Shown here in pieces: positions 33,418 through 50,800 of a stretch of 64,000 nucleotides of DNA. The notes beneath the pieces were generated by a model. That model did not search any database and had not been told where the DNA came from. It saw only the letters and a program-made list of their open reading frames with translations. The translations under genes were made by a program, and so were the position numbers. Numbering within the stretch: the stretch's first letter is position 1; the number at the start of each line of letters is the position of its first letter. The DNA comes from Lepidodermella squamata (Eukaryota > Animalia > Gastrotricha). The DNA lies in assembly GCA_047495785.1 (NCBI GenBank), contig JBLDXI010000001.1, positions 2,418,001 to 2,482,000 on the forward strand. Reading direction: 5' to 3'.

Positions 33418-35077
33418 ATGGAGCGAATAATTCGGTTCGCCGTGCTTAAAAGATGGGAAATCTACGGATTCGTTGTTACAATTTTACTGCTTAAGATCTG
33501 TTGGAATGAGCGCCCATTAACTGCCCCCGAATCGCCCTCTTTCACCTCTATTGAAGTTCCTCCTAGTAATTTCGTCACAGACGGACCTGTGGACGATGTT
33601 CAATGTGACCCTGCCGAGTACTATCATGTCAGCCAGGATGAGTTTACGAAAATGGACCCGAAATCTCAATTCGCAGCTTGTCGCCAGCTCATTGACGCAG
33701 AAATGCATTGCACGACCGGAAAAGATAACGCCAGCAAGATTGCGTACTTCTCAAAGAATCAAGTTCCGATTCCTTTCAACGTTTTCGTTTCGAAAGGCCG
33801 CAATGACGCTGCGGAGGACGATCCTTGGTACGTCTACGTCATAGTCATGCTCTACGGAACTTGTTACGAACATGTATGGTACCTGGAGGGCTGCCGCTTC
33901 GGAAATCTCCGCCTTCCTGGCGAGTATTCGCAATGGTCTTACTATACTCAATGGCGAGCTATTTTGACGCTGCGGACAAATCAGCTAATGTTTCAGGAGT
34001 GTCAGCCCGTCCTAGATGAGAAGGGCTATGGGGATGAAAATGGTTATGACTCGATGTGGGTTATCGCTTTGAGATGCAAACTCCCCGCCACTATCCATAA
34101 GGTATGATTTATAGCATGATATTTCCGAGAGATTCTAACTTGGGAAATAGGACGACCTTCAAAGAGTTACTGTGCAAGGTTACTACACAGACGACGGTGC
34201 TTTGAGGTTCACAAGTTCTAACTTGCGAGTATGCAACCACGACAAGGTTATTCCTAATCGACTGAAACTGGCATCTTGCGCGCTGATAGACAACACCCAT
34301 CCATTCCACCATGTCATTGAATGGATCGAGTACCACCTCCTGCTTGGGATTCAACACTTTGTTTTCTACGTTAATGAACCGCCTGCTAGATATCGCGAAT
34401 TCGCCGCTCTGTTCAAAAAGCATGGCTATGACGACTTGGTGACCCTGGTGCCGATGTATGTCGCATTTCCAGAGTTACCTAAAGCGAGCGGATTCTTCCT
34501 ACAGGCAGTTATCAACAATGAATGCCTCTACCGAATGAAAGTAAGTTCGATATTGAAGAAAAGGCTATACAATTGCCTGTTTGAATATCCCAAGGATCGA
34601 ACTGACTGGCTGGCAGTTATGGACATAGACGAGTTCTTTCAGGTTTACGAAAGCCCGACTCTAGTCGATTTTGTCGAGCAGATACGTAATGGGTTGCCAG
34701 ATGTTGGCGCCATCATGTTCAAGTCGTGGTACTTCGGTCCCGATAACAAGAGCCATCCTGTCTCATTGGAAAAGCCATATTCCAAAATTACAGATTTCAC
34801 CCTTCGAATGGATTCGTTCATCGCGATTACTCGGGAGAAGAACATTTTTCGGACAGATAAAGCTCTGTACATGACAGTCCACTACTTGTCAGCTGGCGGC
34901 GAGTCGGTTTCGGTCGATACCATTGAGGAGGGCCGATTAGTTCATTATCGCGTTCCGACCATGGACTTTTTCGAAGAGGAGCGTTCTAATGGAACGCTAA
35001 AAATGGATAAAACCATGGCGGAAAAATTTGGTGAATCTGTGAGACGGAGGATGATGGACAGAGGCGTCAGGTTTTAG
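33418..35077 (+). CDS. Glycosyltransferase family 92 (DUF23) protein, copy 1
   Basis: N-terminal type II membrane anchor. Motifs EWIEYHLLLGIQHFVFY, INNECLYR and DWLAVMDIDEF (DxD). Two short introns. Confidence 0.85.
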
Positions 35078-35755: not shown

Positions 35756-37635
35756 CTACGCGATCATTTTAAGTCCGTAAACCAAGAGTGTAACCAGTCC
35801 GCAAATAAACGAGGCAATCGCAACAACCAAATCCGCCAATCGAATGATGCGAATGGCACTATTTTTGTGGTCATTAAGCCAGACAAGTCGCTTGGCGGTG
35901 CGCATATGTGCAATCGAACACGTTGCGAGTGTGTAGATGGTAATTAACACGCAAATGACCATAAAAGCGACGACGATATTAATGAGATACACCTCGGTCG
36001 CTGTTTGAGGAATCAGGTCGAAAATCAAGGTCAACATGACTGCAATTGATAGGTTCACTGTAATGCAAAACGTCGGCCTATCCGGGTGTTTCGGGTCCAT
36101 GATCAACGCTGATATTTGAAGTAGAAATAACGAGATGGTCGGTATGAAAACATTTGAGACGTAATATTGGAATTTTCGCTTCAAAGTCAACGTCGCGGTG
36201 ATGTGGGGATACCCGCCAGCAATGCGCTTTGAAGCGTTGAAGCCGATTAGATCCCAAATTTCGTCCCCTCTCAGAATTTCGAACCCTTCCATAGCGGACA
36301 TGCTTAGGACGTTTATCTCAACTTCTTCGTTTTGATTCTCATTTTCGAACTCGAACGAGCAAGATGAAATGTCGAAGGGAAACTTGACGTAGCTGAAGCC
36401 GTAGCAGAGGGCTTGAAGTAGTCTGAAGCTGTAGATCAGAAATCTGACTCCCAATCGATGAAAGGGCTGCACTTTGATGAGCCGCTCACTATTATCCCGA
36501 AAATAAAAATAAAATAAAATGGTTAAATACTGTAACGTCTGTCAAAAGGACATCAGGGCAACCTTAGACACTTCAAATTATGTTACTTCATCATCTTCTG
36601 TTTGATCGATTTTTTAAAATCCAAAGATCATCAGAATATCTTTCAGCGGAACCACTTTTCAAAATTTGGCACCGAATGCAACATTTTCGAATATTTTTAT
36701 CAATTTATAATTATGCGGTGTTCTCAATAATTCTGAAAATTATGATGAGAATTTGTCCAGAATATCGCGAAGAATTTTTATGATTTTATGAAAAATTTGG
36801 ATTATTTACAATTAAATCAGGAAATCCCCGAGCAAAAAATATTGAAAATTCAATTCAAATTTGGTTACGCTAAAAGTAAAACAGTTCCAAAATTAGAGTC
36901 TTCGAATCTTGAAATTCAGGGGTCCGTTGAATATGCAAATGAGCTTCTAAAATCAAAGCCAAAAGTCAACCATTTTTCGGTAAAAAATGGAAAAATTTCC
37001 AAATTTTGCAGGAAATTCAGGAAAATTAGTTTTCCCAAGTTTGGGTTAATTTTTTGATTTTCAACTGATTTTTGAACTTTGAAAAAAATGGTTATGTTCA
37101 AAGTTACGGTAACAAAATAGTAAGCAAAAGACGAAATCTCACTCTCTAAGGGGTCGCGACTCAGCCATTGTGTTGATGAACTGCATGTCTGGCCACCAAA
37201 CATCCACTGCTGGAATTTCAAATTGAAGCCTATCCAGCTTTTCTTGCGAAAGGTTCTGGTAGCCAGGGTACAAAGCTGATCTTATATCTCCATCGCAAGG
37301 TATTACCCAAGAAATTCGCAAATTTACCATGGCGGTCACGCTATCATTTATTATGAAAATAAAATTGACTAAAATTCATGGTAATTTTACCTCATAGATT
37401 CGTCGCTAATGTCGTCGATTTGGCTGATTCCAACCTCGATGTAACTCTGTATGGGGTCGTTGAAATTGCCAGTTTTCAAGTGCCACTCTGTCGGCAAATT
37501 GTTCGCCAAGGCGATCGGGCATAAATTGAAGAATCTCTCCTTCATTTCACCAGTCAAAGTTGTCACGTCATGGCTGGAAATTTCCGGGAAGAATGAGCTC
37601 AGAAGCAGCTGAGATACTATGAGAAAAGCAGCCAT
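35756..37635 (-). CDS. Divergent Cys-loop ligand-gated ion channel subunit, paralogue of 26890-28200
   Basis: Same exon structure. Motifs NLPTEWHL, VWWPDMQF, CYGFSYVKFPFDISSC and MDPKHPDRPTFCITVNL. Confidence 0.88.
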
Positions 37636-38381: not shown

Positions 38382-40605
38382 ATGCGACGGCCCGGCTGGC
38401 ATGTGGCTTCGAAAAAATGGGAAATTTACGGCATCGTGATGACTATTTTGCTGCTAACTATTCTCTGGAAAGATTATTTTATGCAACGAAAAGGTTACAA
38501 TTTAGTCTCCACCTCTTCCTTTGGTTCGAAGGAATCTGGTTATCTAGACGATGTTCAATGTGACCCTGCCGAGTACTATTATGTCAGCCAGGATGAGTTG
38601 AAGAAAATGGACCCGAAATCCCAATTCGCAGCTTGTCGTCAACTCCTCGATGCAGAAATGCATTGCACAACCGGAAACGACAACGCCAGCAAAATTGCGT
38701 ACTTCTCAAAGAATCAATTTCCGATTCCTTTCAACGTTTTCGTTTCGAAAGGTCGGAATGACGCTGCGGAGGACGATCCGTGGTACGTTTACGTCATAGT
38801 CATGCTGTACGGAACTTGTTACGAGGATGTTTGGATAGAAGATGGCTGCCGAAATGGGAATCTTCGCCTTCCTGGTGAGTATTCGCAATGGTCTTACGAC
38901 ACTCGGTGGCGAGCTGGCTTGTTGTTCGAGGACAACAGACAAGTTTATCAGGAGTGTCAACCTGTGCTCGACGAAAATGGCAAGGGTGATGAAGTGGGCG
39001 ACAACGATTCAGGATGGGTCATCACTTTAAAGTGTAAACTTCCAAAAAGTAGCAACAAGGTACAAGCTATTCTGACTGTTAACAAGTGAAAAGTTGGGTT
39101 TGGCGCATTTTTTCTATTTTCTTTCAAAAGTGTGGGACGATTCTTGGATTCCTAGATGTTCCTACTCAGTCTTCCTTGAGAATTTCGAATTTGCAAAATT
39201 TAGAAATCTTGTAGGCTCCCATCCACCTCAAAAGATGGGAGACCCTAAAGTTTCGCCGGAAAAGCTTATCGGTTCAGGCTGAAGTAGAAGCACGAGCTTG
39301 ATTCCATCAAAAAAAATTAATATCTGGCGGGATTCCTCACCTTAGGTTACCCTAACAAAATTTCGAGTGCGCATAAGAAAATAACATCAGAATTCATTGC
39401 GCGACGAATTATTAATTGATGCAATAATAATTAAAACTTTTAAGCGCGCGTTTTCAAAATTAGAACCCGTAAAATTTGAAGCCCATTTTCTCAGCAACTC
39501 TGATGGCTATCAGCCTCTTTTTGATATCGTTCGATTCCTCGCTCATTGATCTTGAAAGCGGCATCAAAATCTCACGATTTCGAAAATTTTGCCGAACCTC
39601 ACTTTTCAGTTGATAACGGTTCTATATTGGATATCTCTTTAATATTGAAAAATTGAGTAGGACGACCTTCGAAGAGTGACTGTTCAAGGCTTCGACAAAA
39701 CTGATGGCACCATGACACTTACAAGTTCGAACTTGCGAGTATGCAATCACGACAAGGTCATTCCTAATCGACTGAAACTGGCATCTTGCACGCTGATTGA
39801 CAATAGCCATCCATTCCACCATGTCATCGAATGGATCGAGTATCATCAACTACTTGGGATTCAACACTTTGTTTTTTATGTCAACGAACCGCCGGCTAGA
39901 TATAGCGAATTCGCCGCCTTGTTCAAAAAGCATGGTTATGACGACTTGGTCACCTTAGTGCCGATGTATGTCGCATTTCCAACGTTACCTAAAGCGAGCG
40001 GATTCTTCCTACAGGCAGCTATCAACCATGAATGCTTCTACCGAATGAAAGTAAGTTCGATATTAAAGAAAAGGCTATACAATTGCCTGTTTGAATATCC
40101 CAAGGATCGAACTGACTGGTTGGCAGTTATGGACGTCGACGAGTTCTTTCAGGTCTACGAAAGTCCGAATCTAGCTGATTTTGTCGAGCAGACACGTCAT
40201 GACATGCCAGATGTTGGTGCCATTATGTTTAAGGCTTGGTATTTTGGCCCTGGGAACGAAACTTACGATGTTTCATCAGAAAAACCGGGATTGAAAATCG
40301 CTGATTTGACCCTCCGGATGGATTCTTTCATCGAAAACGGCCGGGAGAAGAACATATTTCGGACGGATAAAGCTCTGTACATGACGATTCACCACTTGTC
40401 GGCCGGCGGGAGAGTTCACATTGTGGATGCGGTTAAAACAGGCCGTTTAGTACATTATCGCATTCCGACTATGTACTTCTTTGACGAGGAGCAATTTTAC
40501 GGCAAGCTGAAAATCGATAATTCTATGGCGGAGAAATTTGGCGAATCTGTGAAACGGAGAATGATGGATAGAGGCGTGAATCTTCAGCTAGATGCGAATT
40601 TCTGA
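38382..40605 (+). CDS. Glycosyltransferase family 92 (DUF23) protein, copy 2
   Basis: Close paralogue of 33418-35077. Intron 1 is enlarged by a MITE. Confidence 0.85.
39074..39621. mobile_element. MITE family 1, copy 3, in GT92 intron 1
   Basis: GACTGTTAACAAGTGAAAAG..CTTTTCAGTTGATAACGGT, homologous to copies 1 and 2. Absent from the matching intron of GT92 copy 1. Confidence 0.85.
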
Positions 40606-40823: not shown

Positions 40824-43800
40824 TCATTTTTCGGCGAGAGCAGATTTTAACATTTCCGAAATCGATTCATTTTCGGAAGGAGTCGAATTTATCGAAGCTT
40901 TGATCAAAGCAGTACGTTCGTCTTGACTGACGGCTAAATTGGGACATTCCAGCAAAAATGCCACAATATCCTCATTTTCATTCGAACAAGCCAAATGCAA
41001 AGCATGCACGCCATCTTTTGTCCTCGTCGATATGGCGGCGCTATTCCGAGAGTAGAGCATCTTCAAAATTTCGAACTTACCCTCACTCACCGCGAATAAA
41101 AACGGTGTTTTCCCGGTAGCATTATCGGTTTGATCAATCAGCTGCGGATAGCGATCGGCGAGAAATTGAGCAATCTCTAAATGATTATTTCGCACGGCTA
41201 TTGTTAGATTGTTACAACCATTTACGTCCTGCAACTTCGCGACTTCACTCGGTGATTTTGAATGAAGAAATTTCACGATTTCAATAGAGCCGGATCGACA
41301 CGCATAAGTGAACGCTGTTTGGCCTGATTTGTTCCGAGGTGCGAAATCATCCGGTTGTAGTTTAGCCGCTAGAAATTTGACTATCCCAACATCGCCATTA
41401 CCAGAAGCAGCCATTAAAGGAGTGAAGCCGGCCGAATTCGGTAGATTGATCGATTCAGGCCATCGATCTAGCAGCAGTTCGACCAGTTGTTGCAGGCCAC
41501 TTTCCAAGGCAAATAAAATAGCTGTTTGGCCTTTTTTATCTACAACCTTAACGGTATCGGGCGATTTTTCGCATAAATATGCGCAAATTTCAAAATGGCC
41601 CTTTTCCGCAGCTGCCATTAAGGCGGATTTTCCATTTTTATCGACTTGATTAACCAGATCCGAATTTTTCGCGAAAAATAACTGAACAAGAGGTAAATGG
41701 CCATTTTCAGCGGCTAGGTATGGGCTATTCGCCCCGTTCGAATCGACCGATCTCAACATTTCAGGGCAATTTTCGAGGAAAAATTCCGCAAGTGGAAAAT
41801 GGCCGTTTTTAGCCGCGTGCATTAGGCAATTCTGCTGTTTCGCATCGACCAATTTAGCCGCCTGATTGTTTTCTTTGAACAGCCAAGTGGCGATGTCGAG
41901 ATGCCCGCCGATCGTAGCATGACTCATCGCAGTTAATCCATCTGAATCTTGAAGTGAAGCTGAGTCAGGCTGCGATTTATATAGCTCGCGAACTATTTCG
42001 AAATGGCCATTCATCGCCGCGTAAATCAGCGGCGTTTCGCCGAAAAAGTCTTGCAGAGCAATCAAGGTGCGATCGATTTTCGGTAGGAGAAATCGAACAA
42101 TTTCAACATGGCCGTTTTCCGCCGCGTAGCTCAAAGCACTTCGTCGTTCGAAGTCCAATAAATCGACGCATTTTGGGCTCGATTTCGATAGAAATTCAAC
42201 AATTTCACGATGGCCGTTTTTCGACGCGTAAATTAAAGCTGTTCGGCCTTCTACGCCCTCTCGGCAGATCGATTCGCCACGGTTCGGTGATTTTTCGAGT
42301 AATTTCTGTAAAATTTCGAATTTTCCCAACCTAGCTGCGATGATTAGAGCTGAATCTATGCAGTTTTCCTCGCAACTATCAGCCGTAATTTCTGCAATTT
42401 TTCCGGAATTTTCTAGAATTATTTGAATAATTCTGTTGTTAGGTGTTTGATTCGCCAGCCATTTCTCCTCGTCATACTCGAATTTCCAGGGGTTAATTAA
42501 CCGCTTAATAGGCTTCCTTTCGTCGAAATAAGCCGCTCCTCCGTCGTAGATTTCAAAAATCAGCGAATAATTCTTCACCGGATGCTTTTCGCGAAGAATC
42601 GAGATGAAATTCAAATTTTCAGCTTTCAGCTTCGTCAGCAGTTTCGCAACCAGCCGATACGAATGATTGACCCCGCCATACATTCGCTTGACATCTTTCG
42701 ACGTGACATTATCGTCCCATTCAGCGTTGTAAAGATGATGAAGCAAAGTCGCGCCATTCGTCAATTCCTTCGATTTTGAACCGAAAATCTCCAATAATTC
42801 ACAGCCACGTAAATTTCGAATTATTCGCTCGAGTAAAATTCGACTCTGGTGTTTTACCGCCTCGCAAATTATCGAAATTCGATTAATTGATGGGTTCTTA
42901 GTTTGAACGACAAACATTTCTCCAGTTAAAATTTTAAGGCGGATAAAATTCAAAAATTCGTGATAATCCGTTGTAGCTTCGTCGATTTTGTACTGTTTCC
43001 TGGAAATTTCCAACGCAGCTTCGTGAAGTAATTGATGAACAACGAAACGAAGACCTTCCTCAGCTGAATCGTTGGTTGATTTCGAAAATTTTCTCGCCAA
43101 GCATTTTTTCTCGAACATATTGCACAAAGCGGCGCCTTTAATTTTGAAATCACTGCCGGTAAAGCCCCACAAAATTGCGAGATCTTCGACTGGAACAGGT
43201 TCGGCTGGTTCGAAAAATAGGAAGGCTAAATAACTTTGCCGTAATTTCGGCTCCAATCTCGAGACTCCAAGCTCGAAAGCTTGCATCAAGGCTCCGAGCT
43301 GGTTATTGTCTATATCTGCCGCCAAACTGCTGATTTTTTCGTTCATAATCGCTTGAAATTCGCCGTCAATGTCCCAACATTCTTCGAATCTAGCCGCGAT
43401 AAGACTCGCAATCAGCGGTAGCCGGCAGCTTCGTTTCGCTAATTCGTCGATTTTCGAATGGCTTAATTTGTTTGATAATTCAAAAGTTTTCGCCAGCATT
43501 CGGGCGATTTCGCCGTCGGTCATTTCTTCGATGGCGTGGATTTTCCGGACGACTCGGCGCGCTGCCAAATCACGAGCTATCGCCAAGTATGCAGCATTCG
43601 GGCACTGTTTAAAGATTGATTCGAGAATTTTCGGGTTGTAAACGTCGTCCAATATGAAAATCAGCCGCCGTTCTAGTTTACTTTCAATAAAATCGACAGC
43701 GCTGTCGAGTTCAAAAAATTTCGTTGCCGAATCTCCGATTGCTTTCTGAGTTAGATTGAGCAGTTTTGAGGTAAAGGCTTGTTCCGCCGTTGAGTCGAAC

Positions 43801-44895
43801 GCGTTTGGGTCGTGCCATTCGAAACAATTTAGCCAGATTGCAATGCTGATTTGGCACTCGCGTTGGAGAAATTCTTGATGGGTATCGTCCATAAAAAGTC
43901 GAGCGATTAGGCTGGTTTTGCCACTCCCACCCCCTCCAGTTACAACCACAATTCCTATCACAGAGAAAAAATCGTATCTGTTATCCAGTAAGCCCAATAA
44001 TTGGGTAAAAGGGTCTGATCTACAATATTCTACAAATTTTAAAAAATTTAGTAAATTTTAAAAAATTAAATTTTGAATTTTAAAATTTTGGTACCTAAAT
44101 ATAATTTTTGAAAAATTAAATTTTGAATTGAAAAATCTGCTAAAATTGAATTATCCCCAAATAAGATCCACTGAAACTCCAGTGAATTTTTTTATTTTTT
44201 TCCAATTTTCTAAAAATTGTTCAAATTTTTTTTTTAAATTAATGCTAAGTCACATACCATCTTTTGGCTTGGCTGAAATTTTTTTGATTTCTTCCAGAAT
44301 TTTATCTTCCTCGTCCTTTCGAGGGAAGTATCTCGCAAAACATGGGACATCGATCGATTTAAATTTGAAAATGTGTCTATTATGTTGAACTGAGCTGGGC
44401 CGGTTCGATTGATCTTCGGATGAATCAGGCCTCGCGCCTCCGAGTAGCAGCTGAATTTGTTGAAGAATCATCACCGCAGACCGGTCAAAGTCGGTGTCTT
44501 CGGAAAAATCGACCCAAAGCCTAGGGCCTAGAACCATACCGAGCCAGCCATTCACTGCGGTGCTTTTCTGAACTCGAATCGGGAGTAGATTTTTCTTCTG
44601 CATAGCTGCGTATTCAGCCTCACGCTTGCAATTTTCACTTGATTTGTAGTCATCGGAGAAAAATATTAGAACCAGGTCTGATTGATCGATTCCCTATTCG
44701 AAAAATCAAAGGATGCAAATCTCGAGAAATTAAAAGGATTATTTTTACGTTTGCCATAGCTTCAAGTGTGGAACCAGCCATTTCATTCGTATCTATCCAT
44801 ACGTTGTAGCCTTTTGTGGCTAAAAATTCAGCCATTTTTCGGACATTTTCGACTCGTTGTTTCCAACTGTAGCTGATGAAAAGCTTGGCTGACAT
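40824..44895 (-). CDS. TIR - NB-ARC (STAND ATPase) - ankyrin repeat protein, NLR-like, 3 exons
   Basis: TIR motifs LFISYSW, VWID, FSDDYKSSENCKREAEYA and GWLG. NB-ARC motifs Walker A GGGGSGKT, Walker B IFILDDV, RLPLIA and VHQLLH. About 14-15 ankyrin repeats. Both introns join in frame. Confidence 0.9.
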
Positions 44896-47842: not shown

Positions 47843-50800
47843 ATGAGATTTTTAAACTATTTTTTCATAATTTTACTATTTTACTCCGCCCAAGTCGATG
47901 CCGCTGGAAAAGTTGGGTCAGGTGAATCTTGAAAAATTCTACCCCACGATTTTACAAACATTTCCCCATACAGTTTGCTCGTCAGATAGCGATTGCGGGA
48001 CAAATGAAGTTTGCAAAAAGGCAACGAATATTGTCGAGCCGTGCAAGTTGGGAAAATGCTACTGCGCCAAGTGTTTCGATTTGAACGCGGAAGAAGATTG
48101 CGTGCCAGGTAAAATTAACCTATTTAGCCACCTTAATTTTACGCATTTTTCAACAGTTGTCCGAGTTAACATTGGAGATGCGTGTAATCAGCTGAATATG
48201 CACGTTCGGTACCCGGCGAATGCGATTTGCTCACCTAACAACATTGTATCCTGCGCTTGGGGATGGATGGTAAGTCAATTTTAGGCGCCTCCAGAAATTC
48301 ATGAATTTATAAAATTTTAATAGAAATTTCAGAATAAATCGGAAAGTTGAATATTTCACCTTCTGCGTTGCAAATTTTCCAACTTGCAATCTCTTATAGC
48401 TTTTAATTAAAATTTTCCAATTTCATTAATGTTCTGCGTCTTCATTTTACAGCAATTCGGTAATGTTTGTGTTCGGAATGCATCGGCTTCTTACGGCTCC
48501 GAGTGCCGCTGGAGTTCGGACTGTTCGTCGGATATGTGGTGCAATGATAAAATGATCTGCAGTTGCTACTACGCCTACGACAAATACGACCCTGTTCTGG
48601 AGACGTGCATAAAAAAAGACTTTCAGGACACGTGTGAGACGAACAACGAATGCCGCGTTTACGGCCAGAATTGGAACGGATACACGTACAGCACTGGCGA
48701 GTGTCGAGACGGCCGTTGCGAGTGTAGCTCGAATGGGAAACTAGCGGTTACTGGCTACATTGAAGAACGGACGGGCGCGTTTAAAACGAAACCAATCTGC
48801 GTCATATCAGGAGCCCGAGTGAATGCTTCGGTCGGCGAACGCTGCACTGGTAAGAAGGATATTTTGCTTATTTTATTTTGCTATTTTAATGGCTTTGGCC
48901 ACTGTGGGACTGATTTGCCCCCGATAGATGATGATGATGATGATGGTGAGCTCACCCCCCCCCCCCCCCCCTAACCTACTGGGGCATTTGGCTCAGAAGA
49001 GCCACGCCGATCGGACCATCAAGTCGGTCCCTACAGCGTCACTGCAATCGGAGGATCACAGTCGACCTGATGCATAAAATGGATCAGACGGGCATTCATC
49101 CTGTAGGCTTTCGCCATGCCAAATTTACTGTCCTTAACCAAATATATGTGTTTTATTCGACGTCCGTTGCGTGTTGAGTGTGTTGGAAAAAATATCAAGC
49201 CTTAAACGTCTAAGTGGGCAATATCAAGCCTTAAACGTGTAAGTGGGGGATGGTGAGCTCAACAGAGGGTTCTGCTGAGCCAAACTTGTTGACCTCAAAT
49301 TTACAATAGGGCAATTTATTTCCTAATTCTTTACACTTGGCAATAAAATTAGCATATGCGCGCACTTTGAGTAATGAGTGGACGCTAATGACTGCTTTCA
49401 AAAGTAGGTCACGCTCGACGTTAAACGTGAATAAATTATGATTAAATAATAATTTTCCGCAAATTTTTGAAATTTTATCCAGGGCTGAAGGTTTTTATAA
49501 TATAAAGGTTAGATTTTCTGGCAACTTAATTTAGATCGCACCGTAAAATTTCTTTCATGCCCAGATTATTTAATCTTGACTATTTTGATAAATTGTTTTT
49601 TAGTCGACCCGTTGTATTACGGTGACACCCCAACAACAAGCGTTTGCGGCCCCGATTCTATGTGTTACCAGTGCCCAGAGGACAGTAACATCGCCGGTTA
49701 CGGAAGCTTCGACGGAAGATGCCGTGAGTCCCAATTTTCTAAAATTCCTAAAATTTTTAAACATTTTCTTAAAATAAAGGAATTTTGATTCAACCTGAGC
49801 CTCCTGCAAGTGAGTTGATATGAAGTTAATATTTTAGGTGAAAATGACTCCTTTTCCAATGGTAGAATGTCCCTTGGATGATCCAATGTTTTCGACAGCC
49901 GAAACAACTGAGATACCTTATTTCGATAATGATCAGGATGAATTGGCCGAAACTAGCCCGGGCTCAACCGAAGCTCCTACTGAGCCGTCGTCTTCTGTAC
50001 CTGAATTAACATCTTCGAATCCTTCCCCGTCCACCCTGTCCGCATCGACCTTGCAACCCTTGGAAAAGCAATCAATTGAGACTGAAACTAGCGAACCAGT
50101 TGTTGTAGACAGCCCTGTTTTAACATCTCAGGATCTAAGGGTCCAACCTGTCCTTAACTCAGGAATCTCCTCATCAATTGAAGAAAATGTTCTGAGCAAC
50201 ATCGCGAATGGTACCTTCTACTCATCAGCCCCACTAAGACGCTGCTCGTCGACTTCAGACTGTTTACTGAATGAAAATTGTTTGATATCAGCATATTGTG
50301 GCCATGGGGTATGCGCTTGTATGCCTCCTAACGAGGAAGACCAGTATGGGACGTGTCTTCAGAGCGAAGATGAGGCCAGCAACTCAACTTGGCCTATCGA
50401 TGCCGAGACGCGATACGATTATGAAGAAGCGTTACTCTTCACCTTCCTGCAGAAACAAGACGAGGCAACACAGCGGATTACGCATGTTTCAACGAAAACC
50501 GGGAAATTTAACAGGATGATCCTTAACAATTCAATTGCGAGAGCTTGTTTTGTCGATGAGGATTGCGGTGAATTTCCGGGTGCGATTTGCCGAAATCTTA
50601 CAAGTTTAGCCCTAGCTTTCTGCGATTGCCCCACTGGGATGTTTTGGCACAGGAATTCAAGCTGCAAAACAGGTGAGAATTCCTTATTGAAAATTCCTCC
50701 TTAAAATTTATGAAAAATTAAGCTATTTTTCCACTATTATTATTTTTGGATTGAGATTTAATTTCTGATTGCTAGAAAAATTGTTGATCAAATGAGAAAA

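Follow-up and report, generated by a model that had tools for sequence, protein, structure and literature searches.

Gene structure and domain organization

The genomic DNA of the gastrotrich Lepidodermella squamata was analysed in a stretch of 64,000 nucleotides (assembly GCA_047495785.1, contig JBLDXI010000001.1, positions 2,418,001 to 2,482,000), which is called the window throughout, and a gene for a putative intracellular receptor was located on its minus strand between 44895 and 40824. In the favoured model this gene consists of three exons and two GT..AG introns and encodes a protein of 1237 amino acids. The predicted protein carries a TIR domain at its N-terminus (residues 4-126), an NB-ARC nucleotide-binding switch, an all-helical region and a long array of ankyrin repeats. 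This TIR-NB-ARC-ankyrin design is real and is unusual for an animal, while STAND receptors that carry a TIR as their effector are in themselves already a known kind of protein. The coordinates of the exons, introns, domains and motifs are summarized in Table 1.

The core of the gene is a long open reading frame (ORF) of the minus strand at 40824-43997, upstream of which two short ORFs hold the two halves of the TIR domain. The start ATG has an in-frame TGA 9 nt before it, and the first exon ends at a GTAAAA donor after 44749. The introns have a GC content of 0.22-0.27, compared to 0.44 for the exons, which is also the average of the window. An AATAAA signal is found about 45 nt downstream of the TGA stop codon. 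Read-through of this stop at 40824-40826 would append 12 codons before a TAA.

Table 1: Coordinates of the predicted receptor gene and its features in the window
Feature	Position	Strand	Content or basis
Exon 1	44749..44895	-	residues 1-49; ATG at 44895; TIR strand A (FISYS), helix A, strand B, BB-loop
Intron 1	44694..44748	-	55 nt, GT..AG, GC 0.27; 3' end ..TTTTTCGAATAG
Exon 2	44258..44693	-	residues 50-194 and first base of codon 195; GTATGT donor, phase 1
Intron 2 (favoured)	43955..44257	-	303 nt, GTATGT..pyrimidine tract..ATAG, GC 0.22
Exon 3 (most likely start)	40824..43954	-	residues 195-1237 and TGA stop 40824-40826; NB-ARC, helical linker, ankyrin array
Glu74 codon (CKRE, in CKREAEYA), candidate catalytic Glu	44619..44621	-	alignment column
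NB-ARC module, residues ~172-520	42978..44327 (span includes intron 2)	-	profile match to Apaf-1, Foldseek, motifs
P-loop/Walker A GGGGSGKT, residues 201-208	43914-43937	-	motif
Walker B IFILDDV, residues 293-299	43641-43661	-	motif
Sensor-1-like AIARD (Arg kept)	43569-43583	-	family alignment
GxP-like CRLPL	43413-43427	-	family alignment
MHD-like VHQ	43026-43040	-	His kept, Asp replaced by Gln
Helical region between winged helix and ankyrin array, residues ~521-720	42378..42977	-	HD2-like
About 14 ankyrin repeats, 34-35-residue period, residues ~721-1237	40827..42377	-	Pfam and repeat register

TIR domain and candidate catalytic glutamate

The TIR domain was recognized by Pfam from exon 1 alone, where TIR_2 scored 28.6 bits against a cut-off of 28. 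After splicing, the domain aligned over residues 4-126 with bacterial TIRs, including that of P0026, a TIR-NB-ARC protein of Bryobacteraceae. A search of the PDB with exon 2 alone returned only a chance match to a designed protein and profiles were needed instead. Two were used, a broad profile of family and bacterial TIRs and a second profile of family TIRs only. The broad profile matched Cat1, PdTIR, SARM1, AbTir, Hydra TRR-2, the SPARTA TIR-APAZ protein, MyD88, TLRs and plant TIRs, and the Glu of its 'CraE' aligned with the Glu of SARM1 'vhKE', Cat1 'CWDE' and PdTIR 'QKEL'. The best matches of the family-only profile were Cat1 and RPS4, and the same Glu aligned with RPS4 'VRELEK' and Cat1 'WDELEQ'; MyD88 has Gln in this column. 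Under both profiles, Glu74 of the predicted protein thus occupies the column that holds the catalytic Glu, and a Glu at this position is retained in 5 of the 6 family TIRs, the sixth (P0010) having Gln.

The fold of the domain was modelled for the TIR of the relative P0007 with an input alignment that included the two TIR pieces of the window. The AlphaFold model had a predicted local distance difference test score (pLDDT) of 88.9, and its best structural matches were SARM1, TIR-1 of C. elegans, the MilB/BcmB N-glycosidases, RPS4 and the SPARTA TIR. These results support an enzyme-like TIR of the TIR_2/SARM1/bacterial type in which the Glu is kept. For the NADase SARM1 the catalytic Glu is essential and self-association of the TIR is also required (PMC8635717). 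By analogy with such enzymes, the TIR of the window would cleave NAD+.

Nucleotide-binding switch, helical region and ankyrin tail

The assignment of the switch to a family was examined by sequence profile and by fold. With the single sequence, Pfam NB-ARC scored 23.1 bits, just below its cut-off of 23.5, and NACHT scored 21.3 bits, below its own cut-off; a single-sequence search of the PDB gave Apaf-1 at only 12.7 bits. Because of this low score, family membership of the switch rests on profile and fold. A family profile of 13 sequences matched residues 135-469 of Apaf-1 at 5.7e-16, followed by NRC1, ADR1, NRG1-type proteins, CED-4, ZAR1 and Sr35, and no NACHT protein was present among its significant matches to structure chains. 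In the alignment the profile's 'itrd' corresponds to 'TTRD' of Apaf-1 and its 'CrglPl' to 'CKGSPL' of Apaf-1. The MHD site is variable across the relatives, the His being retained in most of them.

The AlphaFold model of the switch, which was built with the 25 extra N-terminal residues of an alternative acceptor (exon 3 start at 44029), reached a pLDDT of 76.5 and a predicted template modelling score (pTM) of 0.70. The top 50 Foldseek matches of this model were led by Apaf-1, the NB-ARC of NRC1 and CED-4, further comprised NRC2/3/4, ZAR1, Sr35 and Dark, and contained no NACHT structures. The NB-ARC of NRC1 aligned with the model at a Foldseek template modelling (TM) score of 0.71 and the model has the NBD-HD1-WHD fold. 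The switch is an NB-ARC/AP-ATPase STAND NTPase and not a NACHT.

The stretch that links the winged helix to the ankyrin repeats was all-helical in the AlphaFold model and was modelled with less confidence, at pLDDT values of 45-88, and no Pfam family matched it. The Foldseek alignments to residues 1-586 of Apaf-1 cover about 520-540 columns and include this region. It is described as HD2-like because Foldseek places it within that part of Apaf-1.

The C-terminal part of exon 3 was matched by Pfam Ank_2 in 10 stretches with 354 bits (5.2e-108), and Ank, Ank_3, Ank_4 and Ank_5 were also far over their cut-offs. Ankyrin families were the only Pfam matches after the NB-ARC, with no LRR and no LRR + C-JID arrangement. 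The ankyrin array is presumed to be both the sensor and the autoinhibitory arm of the protein.

These results are in accordance with an earlier note on this DNA, prepared from the letters alone, which had described an effector-STAND-sensor layout at 40824-44895; the TIR, NB-ARC and ankyrin parts of that layout were confirmed by Pfam, by the profiles and by the AlphaFold model. Its preference for NB-ARC over NACHT agrees with both the profile and the Foldseek ranking, and the P-loop, LDDV and LPL motifs on which it drew are present as GGGGSGKT, IFILDDV and CRLPL. The ankyrin sensor in place of LRR or WD40, the TIR_2/SARM-like type of the TIR and the alignment of the Glu in CKREAEYA with the NADase catalytic Glu (the column of SARM1, RPS4 and Cat1) were likewise reproduced. 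The identification of TIR_2, NB-ARC and Ank by HMMER, which the note had put forward as a check, held in part, as TIR_2 and Ank exceeded their cut-offs and the NB-ARC of the single sequence fell slightly short. The spliceosomal introns and animal gene context that it had noted were recovered as the two low-GC GT..AG introns and the GT92 and Cys-loop channel neighbours described below. Its interpretation is thus supported in part: the layout, the type of each domain and the conserved Glu agree with it, and the intracellular immune sensor triggering NAD+ cleavage that it put forward is a possible role of the protein.

Predicted splicing and the TIR-NB-ARC coding unit

The splicing pattern of the gene was predicted from homology and reading frame. 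Excision of intron 1 gave a gap-free TIR alignment across the junction of residues 49 and 50 with the TIRs of P0026 and P0041. Intron 2 could end at any of several in-frame acceptors, such as the one that would start exon 3 at 44029, and the junction was compared with eight relatives. With the acceptor ..TTTTTTCTCTGTGATAG followed by GA (exon 3 start at 43954), the joined sequence ..EEDKILEEIKKISAKPKD-GIVVVTGGGGSGKT aligned gap-free with, for example, ..EDEIRILGRLKNMCKAPES-GALVISGNPGSGKT. The start at 44029, which would give a protein of 1262 amino acids, was rejected, its extra 25 residues being an insertion relative to 8 of the 8 relatives. The downstream acceptor is favoured because these 25 residues are missing in all of them. 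The most likely start of exon 3 is thus 43954, and not 43997 or 44029 at the top of the long ORF.

Exon 2 contains the TIR's C-terminal half, a linker of low complexity and a conserved helix preceding the P-loop (DVPCF..RK.EEDKILEEI). In the eight relatives aligned, this helix, with the pattern VPxF..[YF]..R..E..IL, enters the P-loop strand directly. The relative P0010 (L002:8001-11429) combines TIR_2, NB-ARC and Ank in an ORF of 1142 amino acids without interruption, on a contig that also carries tetraspanin, anoctamin, septin and Fringe genes, and P0007, P0009 and P0028 have TIR and NB-ARC within one ORF. On this comparative basis, rather than on cDNA, the TIR and the NB-ARC of the window form one predicted coding unit, because exon 2 holds the C-terminal half of the one and the conserved pre-P-loop helix of the other. 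The only sequencing run that contained the locus (X1) is of genomic DNA; its contigs run through both introns, with no joint at any splice site.

Two observations were made in the DNA around the TIR exons. Intron 2 contains, at 44040-44175, two near-identical AT-rich units (ATTCAAAATTTAATTTTT..) about 60 nt apart, which are probably a simple low-complexity duplication. The contigs of the DNA run diverge from the window within intron 2 (loose ends at 44053, 44117 and 44209) and upstream of the gene (45138), and one of them links 45158 back to 44189 through 17 other letters, both ends lying in AT-rich low-complexity sequence. These breaks may be an artefact of the assembly graph, or the other haplotype may differ in structure around the TIR exons.

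Sequence variation and selection

The integrity of the gene was analysed from its reading frame and from the variation in the DNA run. The frame is open across 1237 codons. Comparison of the contigs of the DNA run with the window revealed 37 coding differences, of which 26 were synonymous and 11 non-synonymous, while 65-78% of the differences would be expected to be non-synonymous in the absence of constraint (binomial p ~1e-8). Owing to this synonymous excess of 26:11, the reading frame is seen to be under purifying selection. The distribution of the differences over the protein was uneven: the ankyrin part had 6 non-synonymous and 4 synonymous differences compared to 5 and 22 for the rest of the protein (Fisher p = 0.04). 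This pattern, in small numbers, fits a sensor that is less constrained or diversifying.

Relatives and origin

An exhaustive HMMER search against 1.84 billion representatives (E<=0.001) returned only 64 proteins, the best identity being 29%. The top ten matches were NB-ARC proteins, most of them with ankyrin repeats and some with TIR_2. Among the remaining 54, NB-ARC was present in 52, APAF1_C in 29, WD40 in 24 and TIR_2 in 22. None of the 64 belonged to a named animal, including amphioxus, sea urchin, Nematostella, placozoans and corals. The switch region (residues 1-520 of exon 3) gave nothing at E<=0.001 in a word-indexed search of a protein collection that lacks the window's protein, and PADLOC contained no defence-system family matching the switch or exon 2 of the window.

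The close relatives (P0001-P0012 and P0017) lie on animal-like metagenome contigs, and the genes adjoining them include tetraspanin, ANTH, I/LWEQ, Fringe, anoctamin, septin, Band_7, 7tm_1, C2 and Neur_chan_LBD. Because of these animal-type neighbours, the close relatives are also from small animals. The identity of the switch among the relatives is about 19-32%. The next-nearest proteins include bacterial TIR-NB-ARC-WD40 proteins with an identity of about 22-27%; P0041 adjoins genes for ScpA/ScpB, sigma-70 and a tRNA synthetase, and P0026 comes from a metagenome-assembled genome (MAG) of Bryobacteraceae. P0014, likewise bacterial, adjoins phage integrases. In about 30 remote matches, the distance from TIR to NB-ARC is the same as in the window.

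A quick unrooted tree, which held no named Apaf-1, plant or fungal sequences, separated a set of 15 rows, in which the window and all proteins with ankyrin repeats are found, from 43 canonical rows with a support of 99 in the Shimodaira-Hasegawa-like approximate likelihood ratio test (SH-aLRT). All that this tree establishes is that the ankyrin family stands apart as a group with long branches; it carries no signal of origin, be it by ancient inheritance or by transfer from bacteria.

Comparison with known systems

The protein was compared with the known systems that share one or more of its modules. Like the gene of the window, the plant TNLs RPS4, ROQ1 and RPP1 have an N-terminal TIR with a Glu at the catalytic position, an NB-ARC and a repeat sensor, and the family profiles match both the TIR of RPS4 and plant NB-ARCs. 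The gene differs from them in having ankyrin repeats instead of LRR + C-JID, VHQ in place of MHD and no Trp four positions before the Glu; the identity is very low, and the gene is found in an animal genome with introns of its own. The bacterial TIR-NB-ARC-WD40 STAND proteins (P0041, P0026) are among the nearest TIR + NB-ARC relatives outside the ankyrin family and have a matching spacing, with the TIR at about 1-140 and the start of the NOD at about 160-175. They differ in being intronless and in having WD40 propellers and APAF1_C instead of ankyrin, and the split of the quick tree with an SH-aLRT of 99 sets them apart from the ankyrin family.

Apaf-1, CED-4 and Dark are the best relatives of the switch among solved structures, both by sequence profile and by fold, while they carry a CARD instead of a TIR as effector and have a WD40 sensor or none. 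SARM1/TIR-1, an animal TIR NADase, ranked first among the structural matches of the model of a family TIR (P0007), with its Glu aligned; it differs in being regulated by ARM and SAM regions, in forming a preformed octamer rather than using a STAND switch, and in having Trp four positions before the Glu. The animal NLRs of the NACHT-LRR type share neither the NTPase nor the sensor with the gene, as its NTPase is not a NACHT and its sensor is not an LRR.

Expanded NB-ARC repertoires occur among animals in amphioxus, sea urchin, Nematostella, placozoans and corals. In placozoans, the 39 NB-ARC genes carry WD40 or TPR tails (PMC6321704), and in corals ankyrin repeats are possible on NACHT/NB-ARC proteins (PMC4083563). 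In the literature no described animal family combining TIR, NB-ARC and ankyrin was found, nor anything specific on gastrotrich NLRs. Fungal NLR-like proteins are STAND proteins having NB-ARC or NACHT with ANK, TPR or WD40 and variable N-terminal effectors (PMC4986451); they share with the gene a STAND switch with an ankyrin sensor and differ in belonging to another kingdom. Of the HMMER matches, none was identified as fungal, none of the searches having been aimed at a fungal relationship. The view of the earlier note that such architectures are best known from bacteria and fungi is to be qualified by the precedent of an animal TIR-NB-ARC protein noted in amphioxus in 2007 (PMC2246300).

Proposed function and alternative explanations

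The locus is a real, intact gene of an invertebrate with small introns, and codes for a predicted cytoplasmic STAND (NLR-like) receptor. It is judged reasonably probable that this receptor acts through an NAD+-cleaving TIR, its mechanism being assigned by analogy. The individual steps were derived from Apaf-1, the plant TNLs, SARM1 and the bacterial TIR-STAND proteins. At rest, the protein would be kept closed by the ankyrin arm and bound ADP. Binding of a ligand to the ankyrin array would lead to nucleotide exchange and oligomerisation of the NB-ARC, by which the N-terminal TIRs could be assembled as composite active sites. These sites would then cleave NAD+, with its depletion or the formation of ADP-ribose-type signals, and the outcome may be cell death or defence signalling.

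Several observations weigh against this explanation. In the TIR, Asn70 stands where SARM1, Cat1, PdTIR and RPS4 have Trp, four positions before the Glu, and the family consensus also lacks this Trp; the Gln of P0010 at the Glu position suggests that some members of the family need not be enzymes; and the evidence for the fold was obtained from the relative P0007 and not from the window's own TIR. In the switch, the Asp of the MHD motif is replaced by Gln (VHQ). As the only run with the locus is of genomic DNA, the splice from TIR to NB-ARC is a predicted one. The contrast between the ankyrin part and the rest depends on ten variants, and the variants may include a close paralogue and not just a second haplotype.

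The missing Trp and the Gln of P0010 also speak for a TIR that is a non-enzymatic scaffold, whose oligomer would recruit adaptors like those of the MyD88 and TLR pathways through TIR-TIR assembly and cleave no NAD+. Scaffold signalling is the classical mode of animal TIRs (PMC8635717), and the family TIR profile also matches the TIR of MyD88 (E ~0.007). However, MyD88 has Gln and not Glu in the column of Glu74, the Glu is retained in all but one of the six family TIRs, and it is enzymatic TIRs (Cat1, SARM1, TIR-1, RPS4, SPARTA and the MilB/BcmB glycosidases) that match best in both sequence and structure. The scaffold is considered a doubtful alternative. A different role for an active protein, that of a regulator of cell death or stress outside immunity, comparable to Apaf-1 or SARM1 as a housekeeping component and with an ankyrin array binding an endogenous ligand instead of a pathogen molecule, is considered improbable. 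It is suggested by the closeness of the switch to the apoptosome proteins Apaf-1 and CED-4 among solved structures and by the work of the animal TIR NADase SARM1 in axon degeneration (PMC8635717), whereas the high divergence of the family (identity of the switch about 19-32%) is typical of receptor repertoires and not of single-copy death machinery, and the enrichment of non-synonymous variants in the ankyrin part argues weakly in the same direction.

The remaining alternatives concern the gene itself. A model predicted from DNA, with several in-frame acceptors for intron 2, could be wrong, the TIR exons being a separate small gene, or the locus could be an unexpressed pseudogene; both are very improbable in view of the open frame of 1237 codons, the strong synonymous excess among the variants, the polyadenylation signal after the stop, the occurrence of TIR and NB-ARC in one ORF in relatives, and the pre-P-loop helix on the TIR exon, which runs gap-free into exon 3 as in the eight relatives. 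The presence of bacterial TIR-NB-ARC-WD40 proteins (P0041 beside ScpA/ScpB and sigma-70, P0026 in the Bryobacteraceae MAG) among the closest matches beyond the ankyrin family could point to bacterial contamination or to a very recent, undomesticated horizontal transfer of a bacterial TIR-NB-ARC gene. Such an origin is hardly credible: the gene has two AT-rich spliceosomal introns, an exon GC equal to the average of the window and animal-type neighbours (GT92, Cys-loop channel) on the same contig, its identity to bacterial proteins is only about 22-27%, and its relatives lie on other animal-like contigs. Contamination in particular is effectively refuted.

TIR domains that are linked to a STAND switch and cleave NAD+ are central to the immunity of plants and bacteria. 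To our knowledge, SARM1 is the only well-studied TIR NADase of animals, and it is not a STAND receptor. For a NAD+-cleaving STAND receptor in a gastrotrich, a possible history can be put forward tentatively, in which a lineage of microscopic animals kept or acquired a TIR-NB-ARC module of bacterial type, exchanged the WD40 sensor for ankyrin repeats and expanded a repertoire of NAD+-cleaving intracellular receptors. If this is true, the family would be an animal counterpart to the TNL immunity of plants that evolved independently of NACHT-LRR proteins. A maintained, multi-copy TIR-NB-ARC-ankyrin family in an animal would mean that Metazoa, too, employ the design of plants and bacteria or have invented it anew. 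Such a family would further bear on the movement of modules between bacteria and animals, and with it the ability of STAND receptors in animals to signal through the chemistry of NAD+ could be tested in a tractable way.

Neighbouring genes

The window contains no paralogue of the receptor gene, and its other recognizable genes are of animal type, namely two GT92 glycosyltransferase genes, pieces of a Cys-loop channel and an ORF with an EB module. The glycosyltransferase genes belong to two similar pairs of ORFs on the plus strand (33418-35077 and 38382-40605), each with an ORF lacking Pfam matches followed by a Glyco_transf_92 ORF (1e-18 and 3e-17), and the pairs look like tandem duplicates just downstream of the receptor gene. 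The ORF at 35756-36472 on the minus strand showed a weak match to the membrane region of neurotransmitter-gated channels (4.7e-4), and the ORF at 49838-50704 on the plus strand a weak match to the EB module (9e-5).

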